Shown here: positions 4,613 through 22,600 of the stretch, piece by piece
How the letters are laid out: every line of letters begins with the position of its first letter
Position numbering within the stretch: position 1 is the stretch's first letter
Assembly: GCA_965644315.1 (NCBI GenBank)
Contig: CBFFRQ010000057.1
Coordinates: 434,001 to 498,000 of the forward strand
Length of the DNA stretch: 64,000 nt
Source: Caecitellus pseudoparvulus
Lineage: Eukaryota; Protista; Bigyra: Bicosoecida
Direction: 5' to 3'
Position numbers and translations under genes: made by a program
The notes under the pieces: model-generated
What the model saw: only the letters and a program-made list of their open reading frames with translations
What the model was told of the DNA's origin: nothing
The model's database searches: none

Positions 4613-7600
4613 TCACCCTTGGTGTCTTGGGAGCGCGATGGTCGGTCGCGCAAGTGCAACCGTTTCGCCTCCCCACACACACAGCGGGTCAGGGAGGGGC
4701 ATCGCATGGGGTACTTCCTCGACCTCCACTGCAACGTGCTTTCCTAACTCCACTGTTTCAGGATCCCACTCTTCGTCCATCCAGTCAGCGTCGTGCAGCA
4801 CCAGGATGGAGTCGTCCTCTGGAGCGGGAAGCCCCACCGCCGCGTAGCAGGCCGCCACTTGCTCCGCAAAAGTCTGAGTTGGATCAAGCTGGACCGCGAT
4901 GGGGCCGGCCAACACTTCACGGAGACCTAAATTAGCATCGCCGGCCAGCTGCATGTTGCCTGCGTCCTGCTCTTCAACACTCACCACGTACAAGGCCACA
5001 TAGCTCGCCTGCCTTGGACGAACGTGGATACTTTGCAGCACCACGCCGGACAGGTCACTACCAGGCGCCTTGGTTCCAGCAGAGGTGCACAATTCCACGA
5101 CGAACTTGTCACGGGAAGATGCTGGAACGTGCACCAAGTCGAAAATTGCCCCCACGTCCACCCGCACGCGGATGTCGAGCTCGATCTCTGTTTGCGCTTC
5201 GAGCTCCCGCCCAGTTGGGCCGTCGCCAGGCAGGCCCAGCAGCAGCAGGGGAACTGTTTGCATGCATGCATCCGTGCTCACCACACCCACACTGAAGCCT
5301 TTCTCGCTCGGCGAGCGCAGGGCTGTCTGGAATGAAGCAAAGTTGGCTTCGTTCAGGGCCACTGGAGTCGGGATGCTAGCCCATTTGAGCATGAAGCAGT
5401 GCTCACTCGGAGGGCTGCGCTTCTTGAGGCCTTTCAGCACTGCAGCTTGGAACTCTGGGATGGACCCCAGCATGCTATCTGTCAGCCTGATCCTTCTGCT
5501 TCTTTGTGAACTGCGCAAGAAGCAGGAGTCCGAGCTTGGATCACTCGCACCAAGCAAAGTCAGGGAGAGTGTGATGCCTTTGCTTTCCTGGCCAGCACTG
5601 CTTGGCGCGTGCTGCTCAACCACGTCGTCTACGCCGTTTGTAAACTGGATCACATTGAAGTCTGACAAAACATCACGCAGGTCGCCATCCAAAGCCTCGC
5701 GGACACGCGAAGCGAGGTGCATGCTTTCGTCGTCCAGCGTGCCACAGGCCAAGGCAGACGCCTTCAGGTGCGCCAAAGCATCGATCACATCCTGCTCACA
5801 CTCAAGCGGCATTTCACCGGGAGACTGACCGATTCGACGCATCGGCTGTTCTTTCTTGGCCGCTGCCCCAGCCTGTGGGTGTCCACCGCCAAAATGTGAG
5901 CTTCCTCGTCCCCCAGTGCGCAATGGCTGAGGCATGGCTTGCCCTCCGCGTGACTGCGCTTGGGGCATTGCTTGGCCTCCAGTTGGCTCCAAGCGCGCAG
6001 CTTCCCTCTCTTGCTCCCGCATTTGCTTGTGAGCGTCCAATTTCAGAGCCTCATCTGCTGCCAAGGCGTGACCGAAGGGTGCGCTGTCCAAGAAGTCTGG
6101 TGTGCTTGCGTCTGACGCAAAACGGAGCTTAGGAGCATATTTGCCGCGCGAGCCCATCCCAGAGCTGTCACCCTGCTTCAAATCTTCCGCGCTCTGCAAG
6201 ATCGCCCGAAGGCGTTGAGAAAGTTGCTGGATGGTATTGGTGACAAGGACAAATGCGCCTACAAGCACGCCGTCGGCGGCCGACCCGTCAGCCTTGGTGA
6301 TGCCCAGCAAAACATGAGCCATGGAGTTCTTTGGCTTCTTTTCTCCGTACAGAGCTGCGTGAACGAATTGGTTATCGGCCAGCAGCGACTCTGAGGAGCT
6401 TTGGGACAGCCACGAGACGGATGCTTCCGCGAGTGCGTTCTTGAGGTGCTGCAGCATGTCCAGGTCACTCTGAGCACTCTTTGTGTTACTGTCAGTAACA
6501 AGCTCCTCAATCTTGCGAAGACGTTCGTCCACTTCTTCCATGATTGACGCTGGAAGAGCGTTCTCAGCCGCCTCCTTTTCCAGGTGCTTCTGGAACTGTC
6601 GCACGAAGGACCTGTAGCTCCCCACTGCCAGTCGTCTGAGCCTTCGTGAGGTACCGGACACTTTCCCGCTAAACAAGGCCTTGTCGAGGCTGGTAGCTAG
6701 GATGCCTTCCTCAAGCAGCTTCCTCACGGAATCTGTGGCGGAGCGCAGGAGTTCGCGCCACTGCTTGTCTGTGAGTGACGAAGCCATGATCTTGCTGTCC
6801 TTCCACTCAACACCAGCTTCTTCGCAGAGCAGCAGGGCTTGTTCAAGCAGGGACTGCTCCTCGGACACTTCGGGAGCTTCGGAAACTTCGGGAGCTTCGG
6901 GCTCTTTCTCTGCATGATCTTCATGTTGGTCAGACTGCGAACCCTCCTTGGACTCCGTTCCCGCAGGAACATCCAGAACTGGCTTGACCTCGCTGGGCGC
7001 CGCTTGCTCACTCTTTTGCTTGAACACAAAATCCTCTCCTAAATCTGACACCTCCAACCGCATTTTCCCCCGCATGATCAGCGGGAGGAGGAAGCGGGCC
7101 AGGTTCTCAATGTCCACGCTCACGTGCCCAGCAGCAAAGGGCTGCGAGTCTGCGGAGGCAGCTGTCCGTGCTGCGAGCCACTTTGCACGCGCCTCGTCAC
7201 TGCTCAAGCGAAGCTTGTACTTCTCCGGCAGGAATACATCCAGAGGTGGCTCACCTGGACTCGGTTTGGGAACCCGTGTGGCAGTGTAGCTGAAGCGTGT
7301 CCCGCATCCACGCTTCTTTCCGCTCTGCTTCTCGTCTTTCAGCCGTTTCGCAGTCTCGGCGGCACTCTCATGCGAGTGCTGGCCGCATACTCCTGCGTCA
7401 CAGTACATCGTCCTTTCCATGAGGCGCTGGCAGTCCGGGTTCGGGCAGATGCTGTACTTTTGCTCATGCATGAGCTGCTGCGTGCTTCGCCCTTCGTCGA
7501 AAGCAGCTTCTCGCTCCTGCTGATCAAGAATGTCGGCCTCCTCCAATGCCTTTGAGTCGTGCCCAGGTTCCACATCATTGTACTCCACATCCGCTTCCCA

Positions 7601-10600
7601 GCGCAGAAAGAATGGAATGAGTCGGCGAAGCTTGTCCACGAGTGAGAGAGGGGCGCCTTCGCCTTCTGCCTGATCAACGTAGGGATTGACCTCCCCGGTG
7701 TGCATGACAAGTTCACGGAACGAGACTGCCGTGCTGGCGACGTGCTTCAGCGCGCGACCGCCGTGCGTTGCTTCCAACAAGCATCCTCCTCGATTGATGC
7801 CAGTCAAGGCTGTCATCGCTCTCAGGTGCCGTGTTGCATCCAACTCCATCATCGCGTTCTGAGACTTGACCAGGCGCTCTCTGAGCATCCGCAGGGGCAG
7901 AGCTCTCTCCATTTCACTCTGGGTGAACGAAAAGCTTAATACATCGCTCACCATGAGCTGCTTGAAGCCGTCTTCGTTGCCGACGGAAAGCCTGGGAATG
8001 CCTTGCTCGAGTTCAGCTTGGTGGCCACACACAGCTTCGTACATGCCAAATGTTGCTTGCAGCAAGTTCCAACTCCTCACAAACTCGTCAAGCTTCTTCC
8101 TGCCTACATCGACCGTCACTTGATCAAGCCTCTCTCTAGACAGCGCATCCACCATTGGCAACTCCCAAGCTTCAGCCTCACTGACCTTGCCTGCGAGCTC
8201 CTCATTGCACCACTGGTAGAACGACAGCATGACGGGGATGTGGGTGGCGAAGTGCAAGGAGTTACCGTGCTGGCCATCTACAAGCTCGTGGAGCACCGCG
8301 CCTGCCAGGAGAGGCCCAGGCAGCTCCATTCCCTCTTCCGCTTTCAGCTTCGCGTCGCCTGCAGCTGCTTCTAGTCCGAGGACAAGCTGTGTGGTCGGAC
8401 TTCTCAGCCAGTGGGCGCAGCGGTGGCTCTTCAAGCCGGCGGCACAGCGACCGAGGGCGGGACGCAGAGCCAACACTTTCGAGCTGCAAGCCTTAACAAG
8501 AGCGACCAATTTGTCGTGAAAGTCATCAGCAGACAAGGGCGTCGAGACGAACTCCGCGCACACAGCCTTTGCTTCCTCTGAGCTTTCAGCAAAACAAGCC
8601 AAGTGCCAGGCCTCCAAACCCAAGTCCTTCAGAACGCTTTCATGTGCCAGAACTCTGGTTAGGCGGTCGTATCCCCTCTCTGAGCCTGCTATGTGTGCCA
8701 TGACCACTGCACCCCATGCAGGACTGGCCCCCTGGAGCCGCTTCATTGCTTCCTTCACAGGCCGTGCACGAACACTTTCGTGATCTGGATTCGATCCAAG
8801 CATTGCAGCGAGCAGTTCGCAGAACACCAAGCTCTGTGCAGCAAACCTGGCCTTGTCTAGGGGTGACCGCGCATCCGCGTGTCTGGAGGACAGTACTTCA
8901 GCGGCCGCTGGCTCCAGTGGGCATGTGTTTGTGGGTCCGATGCGAAGGACGTGCTCAGAAGTGTGCTTCGCAAGCATCCACACGAGCAAGTCGTAGGAAG
9001 CATGGGTCTCAAGATGCGCGACCTCCCACCCGTACAGCGCTGCAACCTGGCGTGACAGAGCAATACTGAGAGCAGTCGGCATGAACGTGGCACTGCCTGT
9101 CTTGAACGAGACTTGTGCAAGCTGCTCACTGAAACCAGGGTGGGTGTGCAACTGGCTCAGCAGCTGCACCCTTGCCAAACATGGCAGCGCACTCGGTGCA
9201 TCTTTGTTCAGAAGCCGCAGTAAACTCACTGGTGCCTTCCCTCCAGGCAAGGTCAAGGCGGCGCCCGACTCCATGAACAGGACTGCGCGGATGACTGCCT
9301 GCTTCGCTGTAACCGAGCCAAAGCCGCCCTCACAGCCAGGGAGGATCCACCGGAAGCAAGCCAGGAAGGCGGAAGACATCATGCAGCGGAATTCCTCCAA
9401 GAAGCCATCAGGGACGTCTGCAGAGAGTGATGCAAACTGCCCCAGCACAAACAGCATGGTGTCCAGTGGAAGCTGGCCCCGCAGACCAGGATCATTCGCC
9501 GCAGACCTCGTGCGGGCAATGAGCAGGCTCAGAATGCCTTCAGGGGCCCGCATGAGAACTTCAGACATGCACACCACCTGGACACACTTGCCAAATAACT
9601 GCTCGTCATGGCAAACCCCTTCTGCTGTCCTGCACGGCCCTTGGCGGGCAGCAGCCACCCGCCCCAGCCACTCGCACATCTGCGACTCAGACTCGGGGCC
9701 GATATGTAAGCCCTCGACTGCCGCTTGCACTGCGTCCAGGATTCGGCCAGCCCCACTTGCAGCACCAGAACCAGGAACAGCGGGAGCAGCGCCCAGTGAT
9801 CTGGAGCTGTACACAGAGGCGATGGCCTCGGAGACAAACCGAGTCAAGGCTCTGTGTCGAAGGAAGAACGTCAGTGGAACTGACCCAGGGAAGATGTGCT
9901 GGGTGGCCAATGCCCTGGCTCTCTGGAGCAGCTCCCCAGCTATGTGGTCGAATTCATGGGGCATCATCGGCACCACGGCTTTGGCAAAGCCTTGCAGATG
10001 CCGCCCCTCACTCACGAAATCTGCATCGTCAACTTCCACAACGTTGCAGTACAACTTCAAGAAATCGCGGGACAGGAGAAGCATGAGCTCGTCCCGCTCT
10101 TGCAGGAGCTCAAAACAAGACTGCATGTGCTCGAACCCAAGCTGCACATCACCGTCAGCTGCGAGCAAGGATCTTGCCAGTGCGAACTGTTCCTCCAACC
10201 CCTCAACACGCTGCTTGCAGGCGTCAGACACAAGCTTCAAACTGCGGAGGACAGTGAAGCCGAAAGGAAGCTCGGCTGCAGCTGGAACAACTGGAGAGGG
10301 CACTTTCTCACGGCCATGCTTGCGGGACACACTGGTCAAGGACACGTGCCTCCCGACTTCGATGTTCAGGACGCTCTTCACCGCCTCAGCTGCGAATTCG
10401 AGAAGCAAGGGCGATGATCCTTCAGTGTGCAGCTTGCACAAAGCCTCGAAGCCGAAGTCTCTCGCCGACCGAGCCAGGAACGCCTGCACGATGCCAAAGC
10501 TCAAGTCCTGCAACCGTTTTCGAAGGTGCACGACCATGCTCTCCGTCACTGCCGCACTCCACACACCCTCAGCGGCGTCGCTTGTGAGCGTCCCCACAAG

Positions 10601-13600
10601 CCCCCTCCACACCAGCGCAAACATGTCCATGAGGGCATCCAGTAGCACCCCATGAGCCACGGATTCTTGCATGACTTCTCGGGCTTTCTTTCGCAGAGGA
10701 GGAAAGCCTTGATAAATCGCAACAGACAACACCACTCCTCGCTTGGCCAGGGTCTCTGCCTTCATCCCCATCACAGATGCATCCAGGTTGGAGCATGCTT
10801 CTTCCACCCCACTCTCCACAGAGGGGCGCAGTTTAGACTTGAACCACGAAATGTCCTTCGACAGCTCTCGCTGGGCTGCTGCAAGCAGCCACTGCTTGGC
10901 TTCTTCATCCGCGCTTGCCTGGGCTGCCGCGTCACTCTCGCTTACCTCATCCACAGCGTCCGCCACAGTGTGCTGCCAATCCAGTCCAGTTGGGACGAAC
11001 GGGAACCGCTCCACCAAGTTGCGCTCATCCGAGCCGGTGTGCAGCACGAGCACAGCACGGGGCTGCACGGCCCTGAGGCGTTCGTGAAGCGCGCCCCACT
11101 TCCTTGATAGCATGCGTTTCATGAGCGCCACTTGCGGGTGACTGCCCTTGTGCACGTGTTCGTTGATGGTGAAAATCAGCGTCGGAAGCACTGCATCTGG
11201 CGAGCGGTCCGCAGTGGCAACTCGCGAGCACACCTCCAGGAACTCGTCCACGAGGTGCTCAGCCGTCGCCGCCGAGGGGCAGTCGGAAAGAGCAGCCACA
11301 AACGCACATGGCTGCCCAGATCCAAGATCCGAAACCTCCTTCCACTTCACTTCGCGGTGTCCCTTGGTCACGTGTACAACTGGGCAGCCAAGCATGATGC
11401 TGGCTCTCTCCTCATCTTGCTGCAGCTGCAACACACCAGTGGACGACCTGCAGGTCAACAGACTCAAAGGCCGAGCATTGCTTCCCCGCCCAGAAGCGGC
11501 GATGGCGTTTCGCAAGAACTGCGCCCCGCTGAAGTGCTCCTGCTCCTTCATGTACACATCGATGTACGAACTTGGAAGTCGCTTCAAGACACCACTTTGC
11601 ATCACAAAGTCGGGTCGCAGGATGCTCAGCAGCTCCATGTTGCACCGCTCAACGAGCTCAAGCGCCAGAGCATCATCCGTCATGGCTGGCGATGTGCCAC
11701 CCGACTCGGCAGCCTTGCTCAAAACTTGCAGGATCAACGCGGGGATCGTCTCACTGGAGTCAAAGCCAGTGAATGCAGCTTCTGGTTGGCTGCTACAAAC
11801 AAACGCTACAAAGTCTCGGACACCGTGCAAGACGTTCTGGAGCAGGCGGCTTTGCGCTGCGACCTCGCCCTGAAGGAACTCAAAGCTCTCCAGGTAGCTG
11901 TGCGCAGAAGCCTTGAGTATCTGAGCAGCACTCAGGGAGAACTTAGAGAAACGATTCAAGAGTGGGGAAGGTAGCTCTGGCAGCTTCCAGAAGGGCACGT
12001 GCACGACGAGTCTGAAGTCCTGGTGCACAGCAACCGCCAGCGACAAGGCTCCGATCGTGATGTTGGCGTAGTACGCATGTCCGCTGCCGGTGCTGATGGT
12101 GTGGTAGCGGCGATTCAACAAGTCGTACATGGCTGTGAAGATGACTTGATTGCAGTTCACCAACAGCAGTGTCTTGCCGCCTTCAGCTGCAGCCTTGACT
12201 TGACGCAACACTTCAGCGGTGCGCAGCTGCTCTGCATCCACCCCAAGGTCAGCCACGTTCACCTCGATGGTGAGGTCTTGCTGTAAAATTCCGCGCTGGA
12301 AGAGCCAGTGCACGCCTGCCTCAGTGTCAGATCGGTCGATGATCATGGTGTGGCGGTGCGGCGACTCGGACGGGTCGTCAGCAAAGACTGCTCGGATGTT
12401 GCTCTCCATGGCGCGCAAAATGTCCGGCTTCAGCTCTGTGGCGCTAATCTGGCGTTTCATGTCCACCACCTCTTCGCGCGACATGACCACTTCGAAGCCG
12501 CACCCAGGTGTAGCTACAACGCCCCCAGTCTCTGACGAAGATGTCACTCTGCCGTCCATGAAGGTCCGCGCGATGGCCTCAAACTCATCCATAGCGTCGG
12601 GGCTGCTCTCAACAACTTGCATGCAGCGCTGCAACGCAAGGAGCAAGATCTTTGGCGTAAGCGTGTCCAGCGGCTTCTGACCCAGCTCGTACCTCAGGAA
12701 GCGGCAAAAGTACACGAAGTCGCGAAGGTGCAGCCACTTGAAGCACCGGACCGCATCTTGCACGAGTTGGAACGCATCCGCTATCCCGCAGACAAGGTCG
12801 TAGCTTCGCTGGAGACGCTCTTCCAGCGGCTCGTCGGCCTTGACGATGATTCGGCTCACAGATGGGCGATTCCTTGGCAGCAACAGCAACGCAGAGCACA
12901 GTAGTCGCATGTCGTGGGAAGAAGCCGCAGTTTGTTGCACGTGCATGCACCGGTTGGTCTTGGCAGCGTCGAGAATGCTGTTCGACATCAAGATGGTCGG
13001 AACCCCGTTGGGGTCGTCCCACGTGTCATGAGCAGCTTTCAGCGCATGCTGCTTCTCATTGGGAAGCCCAGCCTCGTCCATGACAACGACAAGTCGAATG
13101 TGCGCACTTCCGGAACGAGTATGTCCTGCATGCTGCTCGTATGCCGTGGAGTACAGAGCCTCGATCTCCTCCGCTGACGTAGCCTGCGAGCACTGGTAGT
13201 TCAAAACCTTCATCCGTTTCAACTGGCGGAAGAGAGGCGAGCCAGACTCCCGGCCTTGGGAGTTCTTGGCACACATGCCCACAGCAAGGGTCTTCCCACA
13301 ACCTGGCGGGCCGGTGATCAACAATGACATGGCTGGCTCGACATTCACGCACAACACTGCGCTGAAGAAGTTCTCAAGCAATGGGACGGTCTCCGCCAAG
13401 CCGAGGGGCCGGAAAGAGATCTTGCTGAACAAGTGCCTCGTTGCAGCACTCACGGTGGTAGCGACGTCTTCACAGACAATTCCGACTCCCTCGCAGTGTT
13501 GACGCAGGGCTGCACTGAAGTCTGAGCGAAGGTCTGGGAGATCAGAGCCGTCGTAGCCCTTGTGGCCTTCACCTGGCAGGCGCATCCAGTACACACAGCC

Positions 13601-16600
13601 GATGGCGACAAGTGCGACCTGCACCACGTGTGCAAACAGCAACTCGGTGCTTGTGACGTGAATGCCAGGTGGAAGAAAGGGGTTCACGACACGGGTTTTG
13701 TCCGGCAACGAAGATCCTCGCAAGGTTGGGTGCACTTTCAGCTGCAAAAGCCACTTGAACAAGTTGGTCGCCCGGACAAGGTCTCGGAAGGAAAGGTGCA
13801 TGCGGTTCAAGTCATACGAGCGCACTTTCTCCTGTGCGAAGGAAAGCATGCTTCCAAACGCATCCAGCCCTTGCTGGAATGCGGCCATGACGCCAGCTTC
13901 CTCCTGCATGAGAACTGCTCCAGCCCCGACTCGAAGCTGGGCGACAATGTTGGGGAGCCTGCCTGAGGATGCCTGCTGCATGATGCGTTCTTTGATGCCG
14001 GCGATGAAAGCCTCTTCAACACCAGTGGTCAGCTTTGGAGAATTCACAAGGAGTCGCTCAAGAGGACCGGGCAAGTGCTTCACCACAAAACTTGTTGTGG
14101 CAAGGTGTTCATGCTCTGACGCACCTGCGCCAGCATGAGCTGCCCCTGTCGGCAGGCGCGACGGAACGTTAGTTTGATCCACTGAGCTCTTCGACTTCCC
14201 AGCCCGGAACCCGTGAGGATTGATAGCGCCAGCCAAGAAAAGGTCATCCGGCAAAGGCTCCCCGTCCATGGTGTGGTTTGAGAATGCCTCAGCGATCATG
14301 TGCAACGCACCGGCGGTGTTCAGCTCGTCGATGAACAGCACGTAGACGAAGTCATCGCCATCGCTGGCCAGCTCGGTGAGAGCCTGCACGTTGGCCTTGG
14401 CGTTGTTGACAATCGCCCTCCAAACATCAGGAGTCACACCGTCGTGCATCAGGTGGCGCTCGTACTGTGGTGGTGGTTGAGCAGTCACAGCTGCCTGGAC
14501 GAGTCGCACAGCATCTGAAAGCATCGTGGCCGTAACCGACAGTTTCGGGGCTGCAGCCCTTGACCTGCGACGTGCTGCTGCCTGGCCAGAACGCGCATTC
14601 TCGAGCTCCTGCGTCTTCTCATGCAGTTTTTTCAGCAGTCCATCCCTGAAGTTCATTCCAGGGAGCAGGCCCGCCCTCTTGATATCTTTCACAGACGCCA
14701 TGGCAATGGGTGCTGGGGCTTTGCTCTTCATGTAATGCTCCACAGCATCTGTCGCAAGTGTAGCCACTTCCGGCGGGATGAGCTTGGACAGGGCAGGGGA
14801 GTGCTCCAGCACGACAGCAAGCACAAAGAGAAGCATGTACACGAATGAGCTCTGCTCTTCGCCCTCAGACGCCTCCACCACAGCTTGGATTGCGCCAGAA
14901 AGATCCCGCGCAGAAGACGACGTTTGCAAGTTGAAGGTGAACGCAGATTCTGCAAGAACGGGGACTGCCCATTTTGGCCCTCTTTGAGTGGCCGCGGCAC
15001 CAGAGCCTTCGCTACCTGCAACAAACGCCCGAGCCTTCTCAATATTGCGGAGTTGACCGATGGCTGCCAATCGCTCGGCAACATGCTCAACTGTAGCGTC
15101 CAGTTCATCTTCTGGAGCTGCCTTCACAGCTGCAGACGTCGCGTGCACCAAGTACCTGCGCATTGCAAGGGCAATGATGGGCAGAACGTTCAGCTTCTGC
15201 ATGAATGTCGCATTGCGAACTGTGCTGTACGCCTGCATAATGAACGTCTTGCCCACTCCAGTGTCACCTGACATCAGCACAGGCTGCCGCGAAAGACAGC
15301 GCTGGTGCACGTTAAGCATGTTCATGAGCACGAATGGCGTGAGGATGAAACCACGAGATTCCAGGGCAGGCTGCAGGAGACTCGTGTTCAGCATGCCCAA
15401 AGTGGGCGCAATGGCCATTCGCATGTGGGCCAGCTTGACTTCATCCATAGCGCGATCTTCGCACACTGACAGCACGAATGGATGCGACGAGTCAATGCCG
15501 AACACTGTCGCAGGGGGTTCTTGTCGGTCTCGGCTGGATACCATGATGCTCCAATCAAGCACCTTGTTCTCACGATCGGACAAGGCTTTCACACCTGTGT
15601 CCATCACGGAACTGAACACGCTGCCGTACCTCACTTTCTCGCTCGAATCTGTGGCGACTCGGCAGCTCTCGGACAGGATGACGTTCAGCACTGGTCGCCA
15701 GAAGTCGTCGATGCACATGCTCACCAAGCGTGCCAATGCACCCACCTTCGCCAGGTTCTCGTCAGAGAAGCCTTCCGCATTAAACGCTTTTAAATGTTTC
15801 TTCTGGAGAGAGAACAGTTCCGGAGTGGGGGTGAGGTTAACGATGCTTGAAGCAGTGCCTGCGTGTGAAAGCCCCCGACCTCGTCGCTTCATCTGCTGAT
15901 CTGCAGGGGGTGGGATTCGAGCGGCGTTGTGCTCGCCCGCCTCGAGGAGTTTTCGCCACAGTCGAGACAGAACCTTGACAAAGGCTCCAAGATGGCCAAC
16001 GGTGGGTGTGCCGGTGCGCCAGCCGCCGCCTGCTGATGGCTGAGACTGCAGCGCTCGTAGCACGTCCAGGCTTGTCAGTCCTTGGTGCAGGATGTGCCGA
16101 CATGCATCGTCCGTTAATTCTGGAAGCTTGGAACGGACCAGTCGGCCCATCTCGCGGATGTCTTTCACGGACTCTTGAAACGCTTGGTGGACAGGGTCTG
16201 TCGCCCCGCCAAGAGCAGACGCGAGCCCGATCGCCAAGCATGCATCTCTCCATGCCTCATCGATGATGATGTGCTGCAGCCCTGAGTGAGTAGCGGTCCA
16301 CGTGGCTGGCAGCAGGGACAGACTGGGGAGCTTTGGTAAGAAGGGGTGATCTCGGGGCTCGGTAGTGCCGGCCTCGGGTGGCCACGCTGGCTGTTTTCCA
16401 TGCTTCACGATGGCAGGCAGCTCCACCACCACATGGAGCTTGAAGCCAGGGCGGAATCCAGAGACCGTGCCATGCGCTGAATCCCCTAGACAGTTGCACA
16501 AGGCGAGGTGTGCAAGAATGCTGTCAAGCATAGCCAAGTCAGCCCCTTCTGTGAGCGACAAGTGCAGCCCCCAAACTTTCAGGGAGCTGTCTCCGCACAG

Positions 16601-19600
16601 CGCAGTCGTGTACGCTTCAATCAGCGTATCTGCAGTGAAGCCCTCATGAACGTGAAAGCTGCTCACGTTTGAGCCTGCTACTTTGCTCAGCTTCTGTAGA
16701 GCTTCGGTGGTTTTGCCACACCCCGGGCCGCCTGTGATGACCTCAAGTCCGGCCAGGTGTTGCATGTTTTGGCCAATGTCTGCAGTCAAGGACTGGATCT
16801 CAGCCTCAGAAAGCTCCGGGCACAGCTGCAGCTCGGAAAGGTCAGAGAACAACCCTTCACCTGCAGGAGAAGTAAAGATGAGGTGAACATGCACACGCAA
16901 AGGTTGCCCGGCCACAGCAGCAGCGAGTTGCTCCAGCACAGTGGTCGGCAAGGTGTTGGGGGCAAGCACGTATGCGTAGCCAAAAGAGGCGTCAGCGCAC
17001 GCCAAGCAGGACAAGAAGTCACTCATTTCAGCAGGTGTTGTTGAGGCAGAGCATGAGAGCACTTGGTAGGGGGCAGGAAACGGATCCTCTTCTGCCCGGG
17101 AATGCAACAGGCACCCAGCAAGACAACTTCGCAGCGACGCGCCGGCACACTGCTGCCTGCTGGCATGGATGGGATCGGGCTCTTCCGGGTACTGTTGTGC
17201 GCTTTGCAGGGCTTTAGCAAAAGCCTCAGCCGCCCAATTGACTGCCTCACGTGCTGTGGTCACTTGCGCCAACGACTCACAGCTATCCGCCATGGAAGCT
17301 GCAACAGCGCTGCGGTTTTCGGCAGCGGGGCCAATTCTTGCAGCCAAGTCGAACACCGCAACCAAAGAGTCCAAGTGCAAGTCCTTCTGAACTGCGGCTT
17401 TCTCTGCATCGGGCTCAGGTTCGCTCGTGCCTTCCCCTGAGGCAGCACCGCCAGGAGCAGCCCTGTCCTTTGCCATGGTCAACACCAGTTCGAGAAGGCC
17501 CAGCAGCTGCTGTCGAGGCAAGTGAGACAGGTGTGGGGACAGACTGCGAGCTTTCTCCAGCGCTTCTTTCCACGCTGTCAACTCCTCCTCCAAAAAGCCA
17601 CAGAAAGCCTCCGTGGCCACAAGCAAGTTGCCTTCGTCAGACTCCACTCGCAGTGGGATGTCTCCCACCTTGGCCTGGTAGGCAGGATGCCCGAGCTGCT
17701 GCAAGTTGGACAACAGCTTCGCACAGAGCTGAGATGCTTCATAGCTTGCGATGAAGTCATCAATCGCCTGATTCTTGACGGACGTTCGAGACAGACGCGC
17801 ATTGAAAGCGTTCTCGTTCAACTGCTCTGGGGAGAGCACAAAGCTGGCTGATTCGCCTTGCGAGTACTTGAGCTGCACGCTTGCAGGACCACCCAGCGAT
17901 GACGTTCGAGCGATGAAAGTTCCGCTTTCGACGAAAACGGGGGCTTGCAACAGAATTGCCCCGTTGCCGGAGCCTGACGATACCCCTTCCAACGCGTTCC
18001 GGAGCAGATCCCAGTTTGCCCCCAGCTCTTCAAGGCTGATCACTAACTGGTCAGCCGTAGCAAAGGGCCCATTCGTGACAGCAGCATTCAGAAGGTCTCT
18101 CAATTTGTCCAGAGTAAGACTCGAGTGCGCCGCTGCTCCAGCTGCTCGCATGTGGGGCAGATTGGCCAGGAGGTCCTTCTGGCCCGCAAACTTGTCCAGA
18201 AGCTGCAAAACGAAGGGGTTCGCAGCTGAAGCTTTCTTCGCGATGTCAATCTTCTCGTCCAAGCTTCCATCGTGCTCATGCAGGAAGTCCGCTACCTTCT
18301 GGAGCTCAGCCAGCGCTCTGATTCCCCGGAGCTCGACCGAAGAGCAAGACGGAAAGGCGGCCCTGACTTCGTCAAGCAGCACCACGCAGTTACTCATTTG
18401 AATGCCTGCCATGTTGTTGATGCAGGGGGACAGCTTGGACTCGACGCGCCCAGCTTCGTCGCCGGACCACACTCCGAACTTGAGAAGAGCCCGGATGCTC
18501 GGGAAGATTACACCCTTGAATGCCCACAGCTCTAAGCCAGCATTCAGGGCAGCTAGGCGAGCTTCGAGGCTGGTTGTGGACGACCCTGGCTCGAGCTGGA
18601 AGAAAGTCGCCACCGATCGCATTTCCGTCGAAAGATCCGCCGAGTCAAACTTGGTGTCTGTCAGCAACCCAGTGAGTTGTGTGCCTGTAAAATCACCAAG
18701 CGTGCCCGTATCAGCCAGGACAAGCTCTTTCAATGCCTTGGTCGCCTCACTGACTCTGGCATCCACTCTCTTTTCAAGTGATTCCCCGTCGCGTGGCCGA
18801 GCGCGCTCGTTTGCGGAAGACAGCAAGCTCAGAAACAGCTGATTCAGCGGGCTGCTAAAGTGGCGAAGGGCTGTGTATGTCTCACGGGTCACATTCAGCG
18901 CTGAGCGGGCTTCGCGCACACAAGCGGTGGCGTCACACAGCAACATCTCCGACAGCTCGTCCAGTGTGGCAAGGCCAGTCAGCTCTGCGTCAGGCATGGC
19001 ATCCTTCAGGAGGATGAGGACGGCACCATGCTCATGAAGCAGGGCCGTGGTGTCTGCAAGCTCTGCCTCACACGCTGTGCGAGCCTCCTGAAACGTGCCG
19101 GGCTCCTCAACGCACAAGCTGTCGAGCGCCAGGGCGATGTCATCGTCCCACTCCTCTTCCCATTGCTGCACTTGCGATACAGAGACGCTTCGGTCTTGAA
19201 AGGAGATGAGTAGAGTACGAATGGACTTGCGGATACCTTCCACACTTTGAAGCATGCCAGGTAGTTGTGGTGAAGCGGTTGTCGCAAGAAGCAGCTCAGC
19301 CAGTCGAGGTGCATGGTGCCAAGTCAACCAGCCAGCTTGACGTCCGCTCTCCCCGATGCGCTTCAGGCAGTACAGCCCCAAGTCCTCTGATACAGACGAC
19401 AAGGCTCCTTGGGTCTTCACAATTTGCTCCAGTACTGCTTTCACGACTTCAAGTTGTGTGTCTATGTCTCCTGCACTTGACAAAAAGCAGGCGGTTAACG
19501 ATTTGCACAGCTTGCGGTATGAGTCCTGCAAAGACGGGGACGCGCTGCCCAAGGCGTGCTCAGCTTGCAAAATTATATCGCAGTTAAGCATACCCATGTT

Positions 19601-22600
19601 CGACAGCAAGGAGCGCAGGGCTCCTACAGGTGCGCTTTGACTGCCCAAGCGCGTGTCGAGCACAGTATCTGTGGAAGGTGCTCCAGAAGAAGCGTGCAGG
19701 GCCAAAAGGTGTGCGATAGCAGCAACCAGCTCCTTGTACTGATCCGAAGTTGGTGCCCTCGGGCCACTCAATGTGTCGCTCAAGACTTCCACCAAGGGAT
19801 GCTTCAGCCGCTGTCCAAGCTTGTCTGCAGGCAGCTTGCATAACTTGTCCCACACCGGAAGTGAGTCCCCCACAAAGTGCTCGACCGATGACCCAATCTC
19901 GCTCGTGACTCCGCCTACACTCCTTAGGACTTTGGACAAGATCCACTGGTGTGCAATCACAGCTGACTGTCGCACCTGAAGCAGAGGCAAGAGCGGGGCG
20001 AGTTGGGCACCAGGCGTCCCACAAACCCAGTCCCAATTCTCCGGAGACCACAGTTTAGCTCCAGCTTGCTTCACAAACCAGCCAGGAACCCCGTCAATTG
20101 AGAGCACGGTGCACAATGCAGTGATGCGGGAATCTTCTGGAGCCTCATCGAACACCTTCAATAAGCAGGTCCATGCCATTTTGAAAAGTGAAATGGAAAG
20201 AAGAATTGCCGTTTCACCCTTTTCCGCCTTGTAAGTTGTTGCCAAGCGCACGAGCTTATTAATGATGCCAGGAATCGCGGAGGGGTCCGCGAAGTGCAAC
20301 GGCTCATAGCGCTCAGCCACGTGCATCAAGACATTCTTCTTGTCCGACTCTTCCAAAGCTGCCAAAGCGCTTGCACACAGAGGCTCCTGCAAGAAATCCT
20401 GAACAAAGTGCCCGAGGAATGACTCAAATGTGTCGGCACCCGCTGTGCACAGATCAAAGCACTGCACCAACAGTTCCTTCGCAGCGTCCAGCCCAGCGTC
20501 CCCCTTGAACTCGTTATGCAGGCACAGCACAGCGGAGAGTGCAGACAATGTTGATGCCTTCAAATTCCCACTTTCAGTTCCAGATGTGGGCGCAGTCAGC
20601 AATCCCGACCAGCCGAGGATGTCATCCTCACGCCGAGCCCTTCTCAGCATGACAACCACCGTGGCGAGCACAAGCTGCGTTGGCACAGACCAAGCAGCTG
20701 CTACATGTCCCTGTTCGATGCAGTCCTGCAGCAAGCTGGCAGCGGACAGTGCGTAAGTCTCAGTGACTGCAAAGATCTCAATGGTCCAATCCCACAGTTC
20801 GCGAATAACTGCTGGCTGCATGGTCTCCAGCTCCACCTGCTGCGGAGTGGCAACTTCGAAGAAAGCCTTACAGGCACGCTCAAAGGCGCAAACCACATGT
20901 CCCTTAACTTCGTCTCGAATGCCGTCGCAATGGAGAATCACCTGAAGTGCTGGAAGAAGGCCAATCATCTCGGATGGAGCTGCGCCTGCTCCTCGCTCCA
21001 GTGCCTGGCAGACCCGCTGTGCAAACTCTTCCTGGAAATGCTCCGCCCAAGAAGCCACATCAGTGAGCTCGTCAGCATGCTCATGTGACAGAAAAGCCAC
21101 GCTACCCTTGTTGCCGAGTTGCGCTGCATGGTTTAAGCGTTGCCGAAGGGTGACAAGAACCTCTGGGTCGACTATCGGAGACTCGAAGCCAGAATCACTA
21201 ACGGAACCATCTGCCGTCTGAAACGAATCACTATCAATGTTTCCGCGGTCACGACTTGCAACGGCCGGCTGTTCTTGGCTTATGATGCCCTCGACGCCAA
21301 CTTCAGAGTCAAGCCCGCGCAACTGACCGCCACCTTGTGCAGACATTCCAAACCGTGAGCCGGCCTTGGTCACGAGGGCCTGAAGCGCGACACTGTCAAG
21401 CGGGCCCAGCTCATCTCCCCCACGCCCGTCTTGCTCTGCACCGGAAGATCGACGATCTGAAGAAAGGCCGCCTTGCGCCTTGCTGCCCTGCTTGTGACTG
21501 TCGGTAGCCTTGCTACCCCACACCACCCACTTGCCCCCGCGCAGCTTGTACGGCACACCCCCCACATCCACCACCCTCGCAGTGTTCCCATCAGACACCA
21601 ACGCAAGCCCATCATCCAGCACGTAGTACCCAATGTCACCGTTCCAAGTCACCCTCCCTGTGTACCACGCCGGCACTGCAGGCGCCTCACACGCCGGATC
21701 TGCTGCCGCCGCCGTGTCTTGAGATCCAGCATGTGGCGTCCTGGCATCCCCATCGCCAGCACCAGGCGACACCGCCGCACTGCCACCGCCACCTTCAACA
21801 CTCTCCTGCCCCGACCCCGCTGGCACTGCAGGCGCCTCACACGCCGGATCTGCTGCCGCCGCCGTGTCTTGAGATCCAGCATGTGGCGTCCTTGCATCCC
21901 CATCGACAGCACCGGGCGACACCGCAGCACTGCCACTGCCACTCTTGCCACCCCTCACCACCCACTTGCCCCCGCGCAGCTTGTACGTCACACCCCCCAC
22001 ATCCACCATTCTCGCTTTCTTCCCATCCGACACCAACGCGGCACCATCATGAAACACATAGTGCCTGATGACACTGTCCCACGTCACTGCATCTTTGAAC
22101 TCCACAGGAACAGCAGGTGCCTCAAACGTGCCTTCACGTTCTGCATGTGGCGTCCCACTGTCCCTCTCGACAGCATCAGGCGACACCGCCGCACTGCCAC
22201 CGCCACCTTCAACACTCTCCTGCCCCGACCCCGCTGGCACTGCAGGCGCCTCACCCGCCGGATCTGCTGCCGCCGCCGTGTCTTGAGATCCAGCATGTGG
22301 CGTCCTGGCACCCCCATCGCCAGCACCAGGCGACACAGCCGCACTGCCACCGCCACCTTCAACACTCTCCTGCCCCGACCCCGCTGGCACTGCAGGCGCC
22401 TCACACGCCGGATCTGCTGCCGCCGCCGTGTCTTGAGATCCAGCATGTGGCGTCCTGGCATCCCCATCGCCAGCACCAGGCGACACCGCCGCACTGCCAC
22501 TGCCACTCTTGCCGCCCTTCACCCCCCACTTGCCCCCGCGCAGCTTGTACGGCACACCCCCCACATCCACCACCCTCGCAGTGTTCCCATCAGACACCAA

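Follow-up and report, generated by a model that had tools for sequence, protein, structure and literature searches.

RNF213, or mysterin, is a gene of major importance in human disease and innate immunity, and its E3 ubiquitin ligase activity rests on an unusual one-zinc cysteine finger. This RZ finger (PF20173; RNF213, ZNFX1) has a single zinc site, a free nucleophilic cysteine and a flexible tether to a large scaffold, and in RNF213 it works without the RING (PMC11549300). RNF213's C-terminal domain (CTD) is the docking domain for UBE2L3 during transthiolation (PMC12075652). In the RBR E3 ligases (ARIH1/HHARI, Parkin, HOIP, HOIL-1, RNF216), the active cysteine belongs to the Rcat domain, whose first zinc site is spaced C-x2-C...x9...C(active) x4 C...C. 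Here we describe a gene of the bicosoecid protist Caecitellus pseudoparvulus that brings features of both systems together. It lies in a stretch of 64,000 nucleotides (assembly GCA_965644315.1, contig CBFFRQ010000057.1, positions 434,001 to 498,000), referred to below as the window; all coordinates are window positions, and all features described are on its minus strand. The gene (4613-23512) encodes an RNF213-like giant AAA protein of 6299 amino acids, residues 5356-5409 of which form a small cysteine-rich module (7286-7447). Our preferred reading, to which we assign a probability of roughly 55%, is that this module is a small zinc domain that is homologous to the N-terminal zinc half of Rcat or at least closely resembles it, with a proposed role of C5371 in ubiquitin relay. 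The literature searched yielded no description of a half-Rcat module of this kind in an RNF213-like protein, which does not prove that none exists.

The module had been picked out in a sequence-only reading of the window, and the cysteine-rich peptide quoted there (CPNPDC...YCD...VCGQHSH...GCGTRFSY) is present at the residues given above. We compared it with its relatives in a 16-sequence alignment, whose members are 25-49% identical to the query. Four cysteines are predicted zinc ligands: C5356 (7445-7447), in the CP of the first knuckle; C5361 (7430-7432), which closes a C-x4-C knuckle in the query and a C-x2-C knuckle in most relatives; C5376 (7385-7387), in an invariant CG; and C5403 (7304-7306), in an invariant GCG. 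All four are invariant in the alignment, as are P5357 and G5377, and we infer that the four cysteines bind zinc. A fifth cysteine, C5371 (codon TGT, 7400-7402), is nearly invariant and lies five residues ahead of the third ligand, which is the spacing of the Rcat active site. The intervals of x9 from the first knuckle and x4 to the third ligand are kept in all 16 aligned sequences. C5371 is therefore a spare cysteine at the Rcat active-site position and a candidate nucleophile. The family consensus reads CP-x-C, nine residues, (G)C, four residues, CG, 10-30 variable residues, GCG and NRVPxP. The five-residue knuckle CPxPxC occurs in the query and one other sequence, and all remaining sequences have CPxC.

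Around these residues, the module has a recurring architecture. A long helix leads into it (residues 5325-5350; 7463-7540; predicted local distance difference test score [pLDDT] of 82-94 in an AlphaFold2 model), with a mostly conserved Q and H just ahead of the first cysteine. Between ligands 3 and 4 lies a helical insert (residues 5384-5397; 7322-7363) that is seen in the AlphaFold2 model of the module and differs in length among relatives, as gaps in the alignment show. A conserved tail, TRVPKP...FLPEKYK (7214-7279; NRVPxP...F.P in the family, with a near-invariant R), stands in for the second zinc half. The four-cysteine spacing, C-x(2-4)-C-x9-C-x4-C, was found in 7 of 2000 shuffles of the protein. 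We concluded that the module is not a chance pattern, because it is kept in five close paralogues and one distant paralogue within the genome and in at least 18 proteins from other organisms.

Pattern scans of all 6299 residues found no RING (C3HC4/C4HC3) and no RZ pattern (C-x3-H-x6-C-x8-C-x2-C), and the only other CxxC is an isolated CLAC at residue 2169, with no further paired CxxC. Pfam recognized AAA-type P-loops in the protein and nothing else. The reported absence of RING, RZ finger and RING1 thus holds over the whole protein. In contrast to RBR E3 ligases, neither a RING1 nor an IBR domain precedes the module.

The module had also been described as a match to the RBR RING2/IBR pattern. 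Searched alone against Pfam, the query gave a subthreshold match to IBR (PF01485; E value, 0.058; 13.9 bits, against a gathering threshold of 24.3 bits). When homologues were scanned singly, six matched IBR_1 (PF22191; best E value, 8.4e-6; 26.0 bits against a cut-off of 27), always over profile positions 1-25 of 47, and six matched IBR_2 (PF22605; threshold, 27 bits). The module of a distant paralogue on contig 62 gave no IBR match in Pfam by itself, and no member of the family reached a Pfam threshold. As a control, we examined genuine domains from the same genome: Rcat domains matched IBR_1 best, at 49-59 bits, and IBR middle domains matched PF01485 best and IBR_1 weakly. When PDB sequences were searched with a module profile, the ARIH1 Rcat ranked first (E value, 0.029), followed by ribosomal zinc ribbons (E value, 0.15-0.3). 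C5371 aligned on the catalytic cysteine of ARIH1, and the C-to-S mutant chain 2m9y aligned in the identical column. Profile-profile comparison gave a probability of 93.5% (E value, 2.2e-7; 32 columns) against six Rcats of this genome and 2.8% against five of its IBR middle domains. The similarity to IBR/Rcat profiles is therefore there, and it is Rcat-like with a cysteine at the aligned active-site position, but it covers the first zinc half only, falls short of a full RING2/IBR domain and stays below the Pfam thresholds.

Several further details are shared with Rcat domains. A glycine usually precedes the spare cysteine, the fourth ligand is followed by C-x3-F, the zinc-ribbon fold is common to both, and the C-x-H of Rcats is kept in four relatives as C-[EQS]-H (CEHL, CQHV, CSHV). 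The query itself differs in having Ala (C-D-A) in place of His at Cys+2 and in its C-x4-C first knuckle. Moreover, the module lacks the second Rcat zinc site (C-x2-C...C...H/C); its fourth ligand is followed by TRFSY...TRVPKP with no further cysteine/histidine cluster, and in a VIA alignment to Parkin 330-369, TRF-S occupies the place of the x3-[FW]-C that is found in Rcat and IBR domains. The variable helical insert and the NRVPxP tail likewise set it apart from Rcat. An IBR domain (PF01485; e.g., Parkin 328-377) differs in another way, binding two zinc ions and having no spare cysteine at -5. Because the second zinc site, RING1 and IBR are missing, we regard the module as half an Rcat and not as a member of the Rcat family by Pfam criteria.

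All of the structural evidence comes from predicted models. AlphaFold2 folded the module with a mean pLDDT of 85.6 from the 16-sequence alignment, and within a 651-residue model of the C-terminal region its pLDDT was 83-94. The predicted module has the IBR/Rcat zinc-ribbon fold, and its best structural match is the non-catalytic IBR of Parkin (residues 330-369 in the VIA alignment). Foldseek returned nothing significant for the module, with top rows that were nearly all Parkin, HOIL-1, ARIH1/2 and RNF216; for the 651-residue model it also returned nothing significant, with human RNF213 at rank 3 (E value, 2.6; probability, 0.33). A search of the ESM Atlas by shape gave nothing useful, and a search by features gave weak scores (≤0.81) whose named matches were IBR/Rcat clusters, which we treat as a lead only. 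The C-terminal structure prediction bore out a confidently folded module of the anticipated type. We consider it very probable that the module is a one-zinc Rcat-like unit.

A Parkin IBR as the best structural match also suits an alternative in which the module, as a zinc ribbon of IBR/Rcat ancestry, has a structural or binding role only, perhaps as a knob on the scaffold that binds ubiquitin, an E2 or another ligand. Such a ribbon would form no thioester, and the fifth cysteine would serve in redox sensing, as an alternative ligand or in packing. The IBR-style CPxPxC first knuckle of the query, the missing second zinc site and Cys+2 histidine, and the many members of the clade that manage without the module agree with this explanation, as does the tolerance of a Cys-to-Ser change in two paralogues whose ratio of nonsynonymous to synonymous substitution rates (dN/dS) is about 0.3. 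Counting against it are a spare cysteine that stands at the exact Rcat spacing in all homologues except two recent paralogues, and the retention of the Rcat C-x-H in several relatives. In profile comparison, moreover, Rcats match five orders of magnitude better than IBR middle domains do. Overall, we judge a purely structural ribbon to be unlikely, though it is the most serious competitor of the half-Rcat relay.

The host genome (30.6 Mb in 215 contigs) holds several copies of the gene. A genome-wide six-frame search with the module profile detected six family copies, and the next match was a genuine Rcat. There are five close copies, 78-94% identical over the C-terminal 1600 amino acids, and one distant paralogue, and the module is kept in them. 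The close copies L002 to L005 are on small contigs (C173, C184, C197 and C129), with dS values of 0.12-0.31. The distant paralogue (L007-L009) is a 5957-amino-acid open reading frame on contig 62 (C62:442156-460026), 31% identical by BLAST match and 26% by alignment. Pairwise dN/dS among the paralogues was 0.25-0.37. The RNF213-like gene is a member of a recently expanded family.

Relatives are also found outside this genome. An exhaustive profile search with the C-terminal region against 1.8 billion representatives found 34 relatives, and a word-indexed protein search with region 5050-5650 gave zero matches. The hidden Markov model (HMM) of the module detected it in 19 proteins, including a 6047-amino-acid protein, a 5680-amino-acid Mallomonas protein and two diatom proteins labelled "RNF213" by NCBI; the chrysophyte (Mallomonas) and the diatoms are the nearest named relatives. 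This distribution bears on the idea that the module is a functionless, drifting remnant of a once complete Rcat or RBR unit (RING1-IBR-Rcat). Only half a domain is left, no member rises above the Pfam thresholds, and the occurrence within the clade is patchy, in keeping with a remnant. However, among proteins from a chrysophyte, diatoms and marine eukaryotes that are only 25-35% identical, all four ligands have been retained, and with them the glycine that follows ligand 3, the GCG motif and the NRVP tail. The AlphaFold2 fold is also confident, and the paralogues are under purifying selection. We therefore consider decay improbable.

The paralogues provide the most direct view of C5371. Codon comparison shows that in two close copies, L003 and L004 (contigs C184 and C197), TGT has become TCT, so that the cysteine is replaced by serine within intact reading frames; every other homologue has cysteine. 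The four ligands never vary, whereas C5371 has changed in these two recent paralogues, which argues that C5371 is not a structural residue. Such a pattern would be expected if C5371 were an active-site residue and the family gave rise to inactive members as well. The same observation also shows that Cys5371 is dispensable for whatever the two serine paralogues do.

If the half-Rcat reading is correct, the four invariant cysteines (C5356, C5361, C5376 and C5403) would hold one zinc ion, an E2~ubiquitin conjugate would dock on the scaffold in the way that UBE2L3 docks on the RNF213 CTD, and ubiquitin would pass to C5371 as a thioester and then to a substrate. The AAA core would act as a regulator, by analogy with RNF213, and the two serine paralogues would be inactive or altered. 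We put catalysis by the module at slightly less than an even chance. More tentative still is the broader proposal that the half-Rcat is an active, single-zinc, cysteine-dependent relay for ubiquitin or a ubiquitin-like protein, which would make it a transthiolating E3 unit of a new, minimal class.

The kinship of the protein to RNF213, which the sequence-only reading had asserted, is supported. When residues 3001-6299 were searched against all PDB sequences with phmmer, RNF213 chains alone gave strong matches (E values, 1e-17 to 1e-20). The matches to human and mouse RNF213 fall in three collinear stretches, which span one AAA unit's Walker B region, the next unit in full and the units after it. 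The part aligning with AAA3-AAA6 of RNF213 comprises residues 3023-4001 (11510-14446; E value, 1e-20). Within the unit aligned with AAA4 are a Walker A motif, GPPGCGKT (residues 3401-3408; 13289-13312; Pfam AAA E value, 1.1e-5), and a Walker B motif at residues 3475-3482. The preceding unit, whose Walker B region (residues 3058-3065; 14318-14341) aligns with AAA3, has the Walker A motif GDTGVGKT (residues 2749-2756; 15245-15268). About 300 residues separate these two motifs, suggesting a large insertion inside the AAA fold.

Farther along the chain, a post-AAA segment is homologous to RNF213 (probability, 72-88%). For the distal comparison, we used seven RZ-bearing RNF213-type proteins obtained from the AAA-region search, with RNF213 domain limits taken from PMC7311170. 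A segment with the pattern "HIP...Y.W ... F..AW ... RML..RL" (residues 5073-5224; 7841-8296; AlphaFold2 pLDDT, about 85-95) matched a segment of the RNF213 E3 module that lies 260-390 residues after RZ (hhalign probability, 95.5%; E value, 1.6e-8; 129 columns), and local hhalign also recovered this match. Over the remaining ~770 residues between the post-AAA and E3 segments and the CTD, similarity to RNF213 was not detectable. HMM profiles of the C-terminal 1600 amino acids and a 39-sequence family alignment did not match RNF213 when compared with PDB sequences. The query and RNF213 are thus both giant single-chain AAA proteins with homologous AAA3-AAA6 units, a post-AAA segment and a distal E3-module segment, and each has, or in the query is predicted to have, a one-zinc module with a free cysteine. 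The query differs in having no RING and no RZ finger, in the type and place of its zinc module, in its long N-terminal repeats and in about 700 extra C-terminal residues.

Two landmarks fix the place of the module on this scaffold. The first is the distal E3-module segment just described. The second is a downstream motif, VDIENLARFLLPLIMRGKMRL (DIENLARFLL; residues 5466-5486; 7055-7117), which is also present in relatives without the module. This motif has a weak but collinear match (hhalign E value, 0.0025; probability, 12%) to the RNF213 motif "D....E..L......KP.I.L" near the E3/CTD boundary, ~50 residues past the strong segment. About 240 residues lie between these landmarks in the query, as opposed to ~50 in RNF213, indicating that the module and its flanking helices are an insertion of ~190 residues. 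Family members without the module have a short, cysteine-free linker at this site. Counted from the C terminus, and only as an approximation, the module would lie about where the E3 module of RNF213 ends and its CTD starts. This position, immediately upstream of the DIENLARFLL motif and near the beginning of the RNF213 CTD, agrees with its earlier placement in a CTD-like region. The metagenomic fragment P0024 (337 amino acids) has a cysteine-rich, RING-like cluster at residues ~60-130, directly upstream of its segment homologous to residues 5073-5224. A further zinc module may thus occupy a third position on the scaffold in some relatives.

The position also bears on whether the module could be a strongly diverged form of the RZ finger, the active-site finger of RNF213 and ZNFX1. 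The two are analogous in design, and they resemble each other in starting with CPN, in binding one zinc (predicted for the module) and in having a free cysteine with a later CG. The ligand sets are different, however (C-x3-H...C-x2-C in RZ, C-x2/4-C...C...C in the module), and the full RZ pattern, C-x3-H-x6-C-x8-C-x2-C-x8-H, does not fit the module. A sequence relationship was not detectable: the family alignment around the module showed no similarity to RZ-centred RNF213 alignments in hhalign (probability, 1.8%), and the sole local alignment of module to RZ had a probability of 0.4% and paired the wrong knuckles. The module also lies on the other side of the conserved segment, such that the order of the elements is not collinear. 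Since it is downstream of a segment that in RNF213 follows RZ by 260-390 residues, the module is not a replacement of RZ in place. A scan of the whole host genome found no PF20173 matches, which does not prove that RZ is absent.

We examined the history of the scaffold with a tree of the AAA region from 73 giant proteins, built by a quick IQ-TREE search and left unrooted. The deepest branch had a Shimodaira-Hasegawa-like approximate likelihood ratio test (SH-aLRT) support of 100. One side of it holds animal RNF213 and all 14 RZ-bearing proteins. The opposite side holds 46 proteins (from stramenopiles, Naegleria, dictyostelids, chytrids, a sponge and others), among them the query and all nine module-bearing proteins. 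RZ and the half-Rcat are thus on opposite sides of the deepest split, and on the combined grounds of pattern, hhalign, position and tree we rejected a diverged RZ finger, which we regard as very improbable. The module occurs in three separate subclades of its side, where most members have no comparable cysteine cluster. This distribution, together with the position of the module away from the RZ site, does not sustain the proposal that a different catalytic unit was swapped in for RZ. Gain of the module is a better fit than a swap, because the proteins that carry it belong to a sister clade of the RZ-bearing RNF213 proteins, and most members of that clade are without a zinc module. Some proteins of this AAA clade, which have vWA domains, end in another conserved cysteine motif, C-G-x-CP-x-G-[YF]-SW-x-RCG-x-GWRC-x-GGSH (P0059 residue 4311; P0061 residue 6044).

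The gene itself is a single uninterrupted, intronless open reading frame with an ATG start. Its N terminus, at residues ~170-700 (~21400-23000), is a tandem array of two alternating units. The first is long and of low complexity and occurs in nearly identical copies (GSGQESVEGGGGSAAVSP...EAPAVPA); the second is aromatic and beta-like (WYTGRVTWNGDIGYYVLDDG...YKLRGGKW). G+C content is 57-60% over positions 1-28000 of the window, including the RNF213-like gene, and jumps at ~28000 to 61-75% in the remainder. Marine metagenome and metatranscriptome contigs, including some from the RNA-library runs X17 and X18, match parts of positions 6000-9000 at 95-99% identity, with many synonymous-looking differences and thin coverage of the module itself. 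Related strains or paralogues are therefore present in the ocean. Because these data are assembled contigs, they show near-identical DNA or RNA in the sea and cannot prove transcription.

Several genuine IBR/Rcat domains of the host genome lie in very long open reading frames, of 3128, 4327, 2639, 2120 and 1986 amino acids (C30:54824-55198, C92:108881-109015, C31:703959-704111, C89:172459-172584 and C34:222330-222449), indicating that giant RBR-type ligases are also encoded there. Some of these giant frames have a single Rcat match only.

Our data indicate that a deep sister clade of the RNF213-type chassis exists in protists, and that a subset of this clade has a different one-zinc cysteine module, recognizably linked to the RBR active-site domain by descent or by convergence and adjoining the part of the scaffold on which the E2 docks in RNF213. 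The natural Cys/Ser paralogue pairs form a built-in mutant series. If the module is active, it would be a small, testable catalytic fragment; half an Rcat would then suffice for transthiolation, and giant AAA scaffolds would serve in general as platforms on which one cysteine-relay unit can take the place of another. The RNF213-type AAA chassis would have recruited cysteine-relay zinc fingers at least twice, with RZ acquired in the clade of animals and alveolates and a truncated Rcat acquired in the sister clade that contains the stramenopiles. The multicopy, fast-evolving paralogues, some of them with serine in place of the cysteine, would then be a cell-autonomous defence family of protists, analogous to mammalian RNF213.

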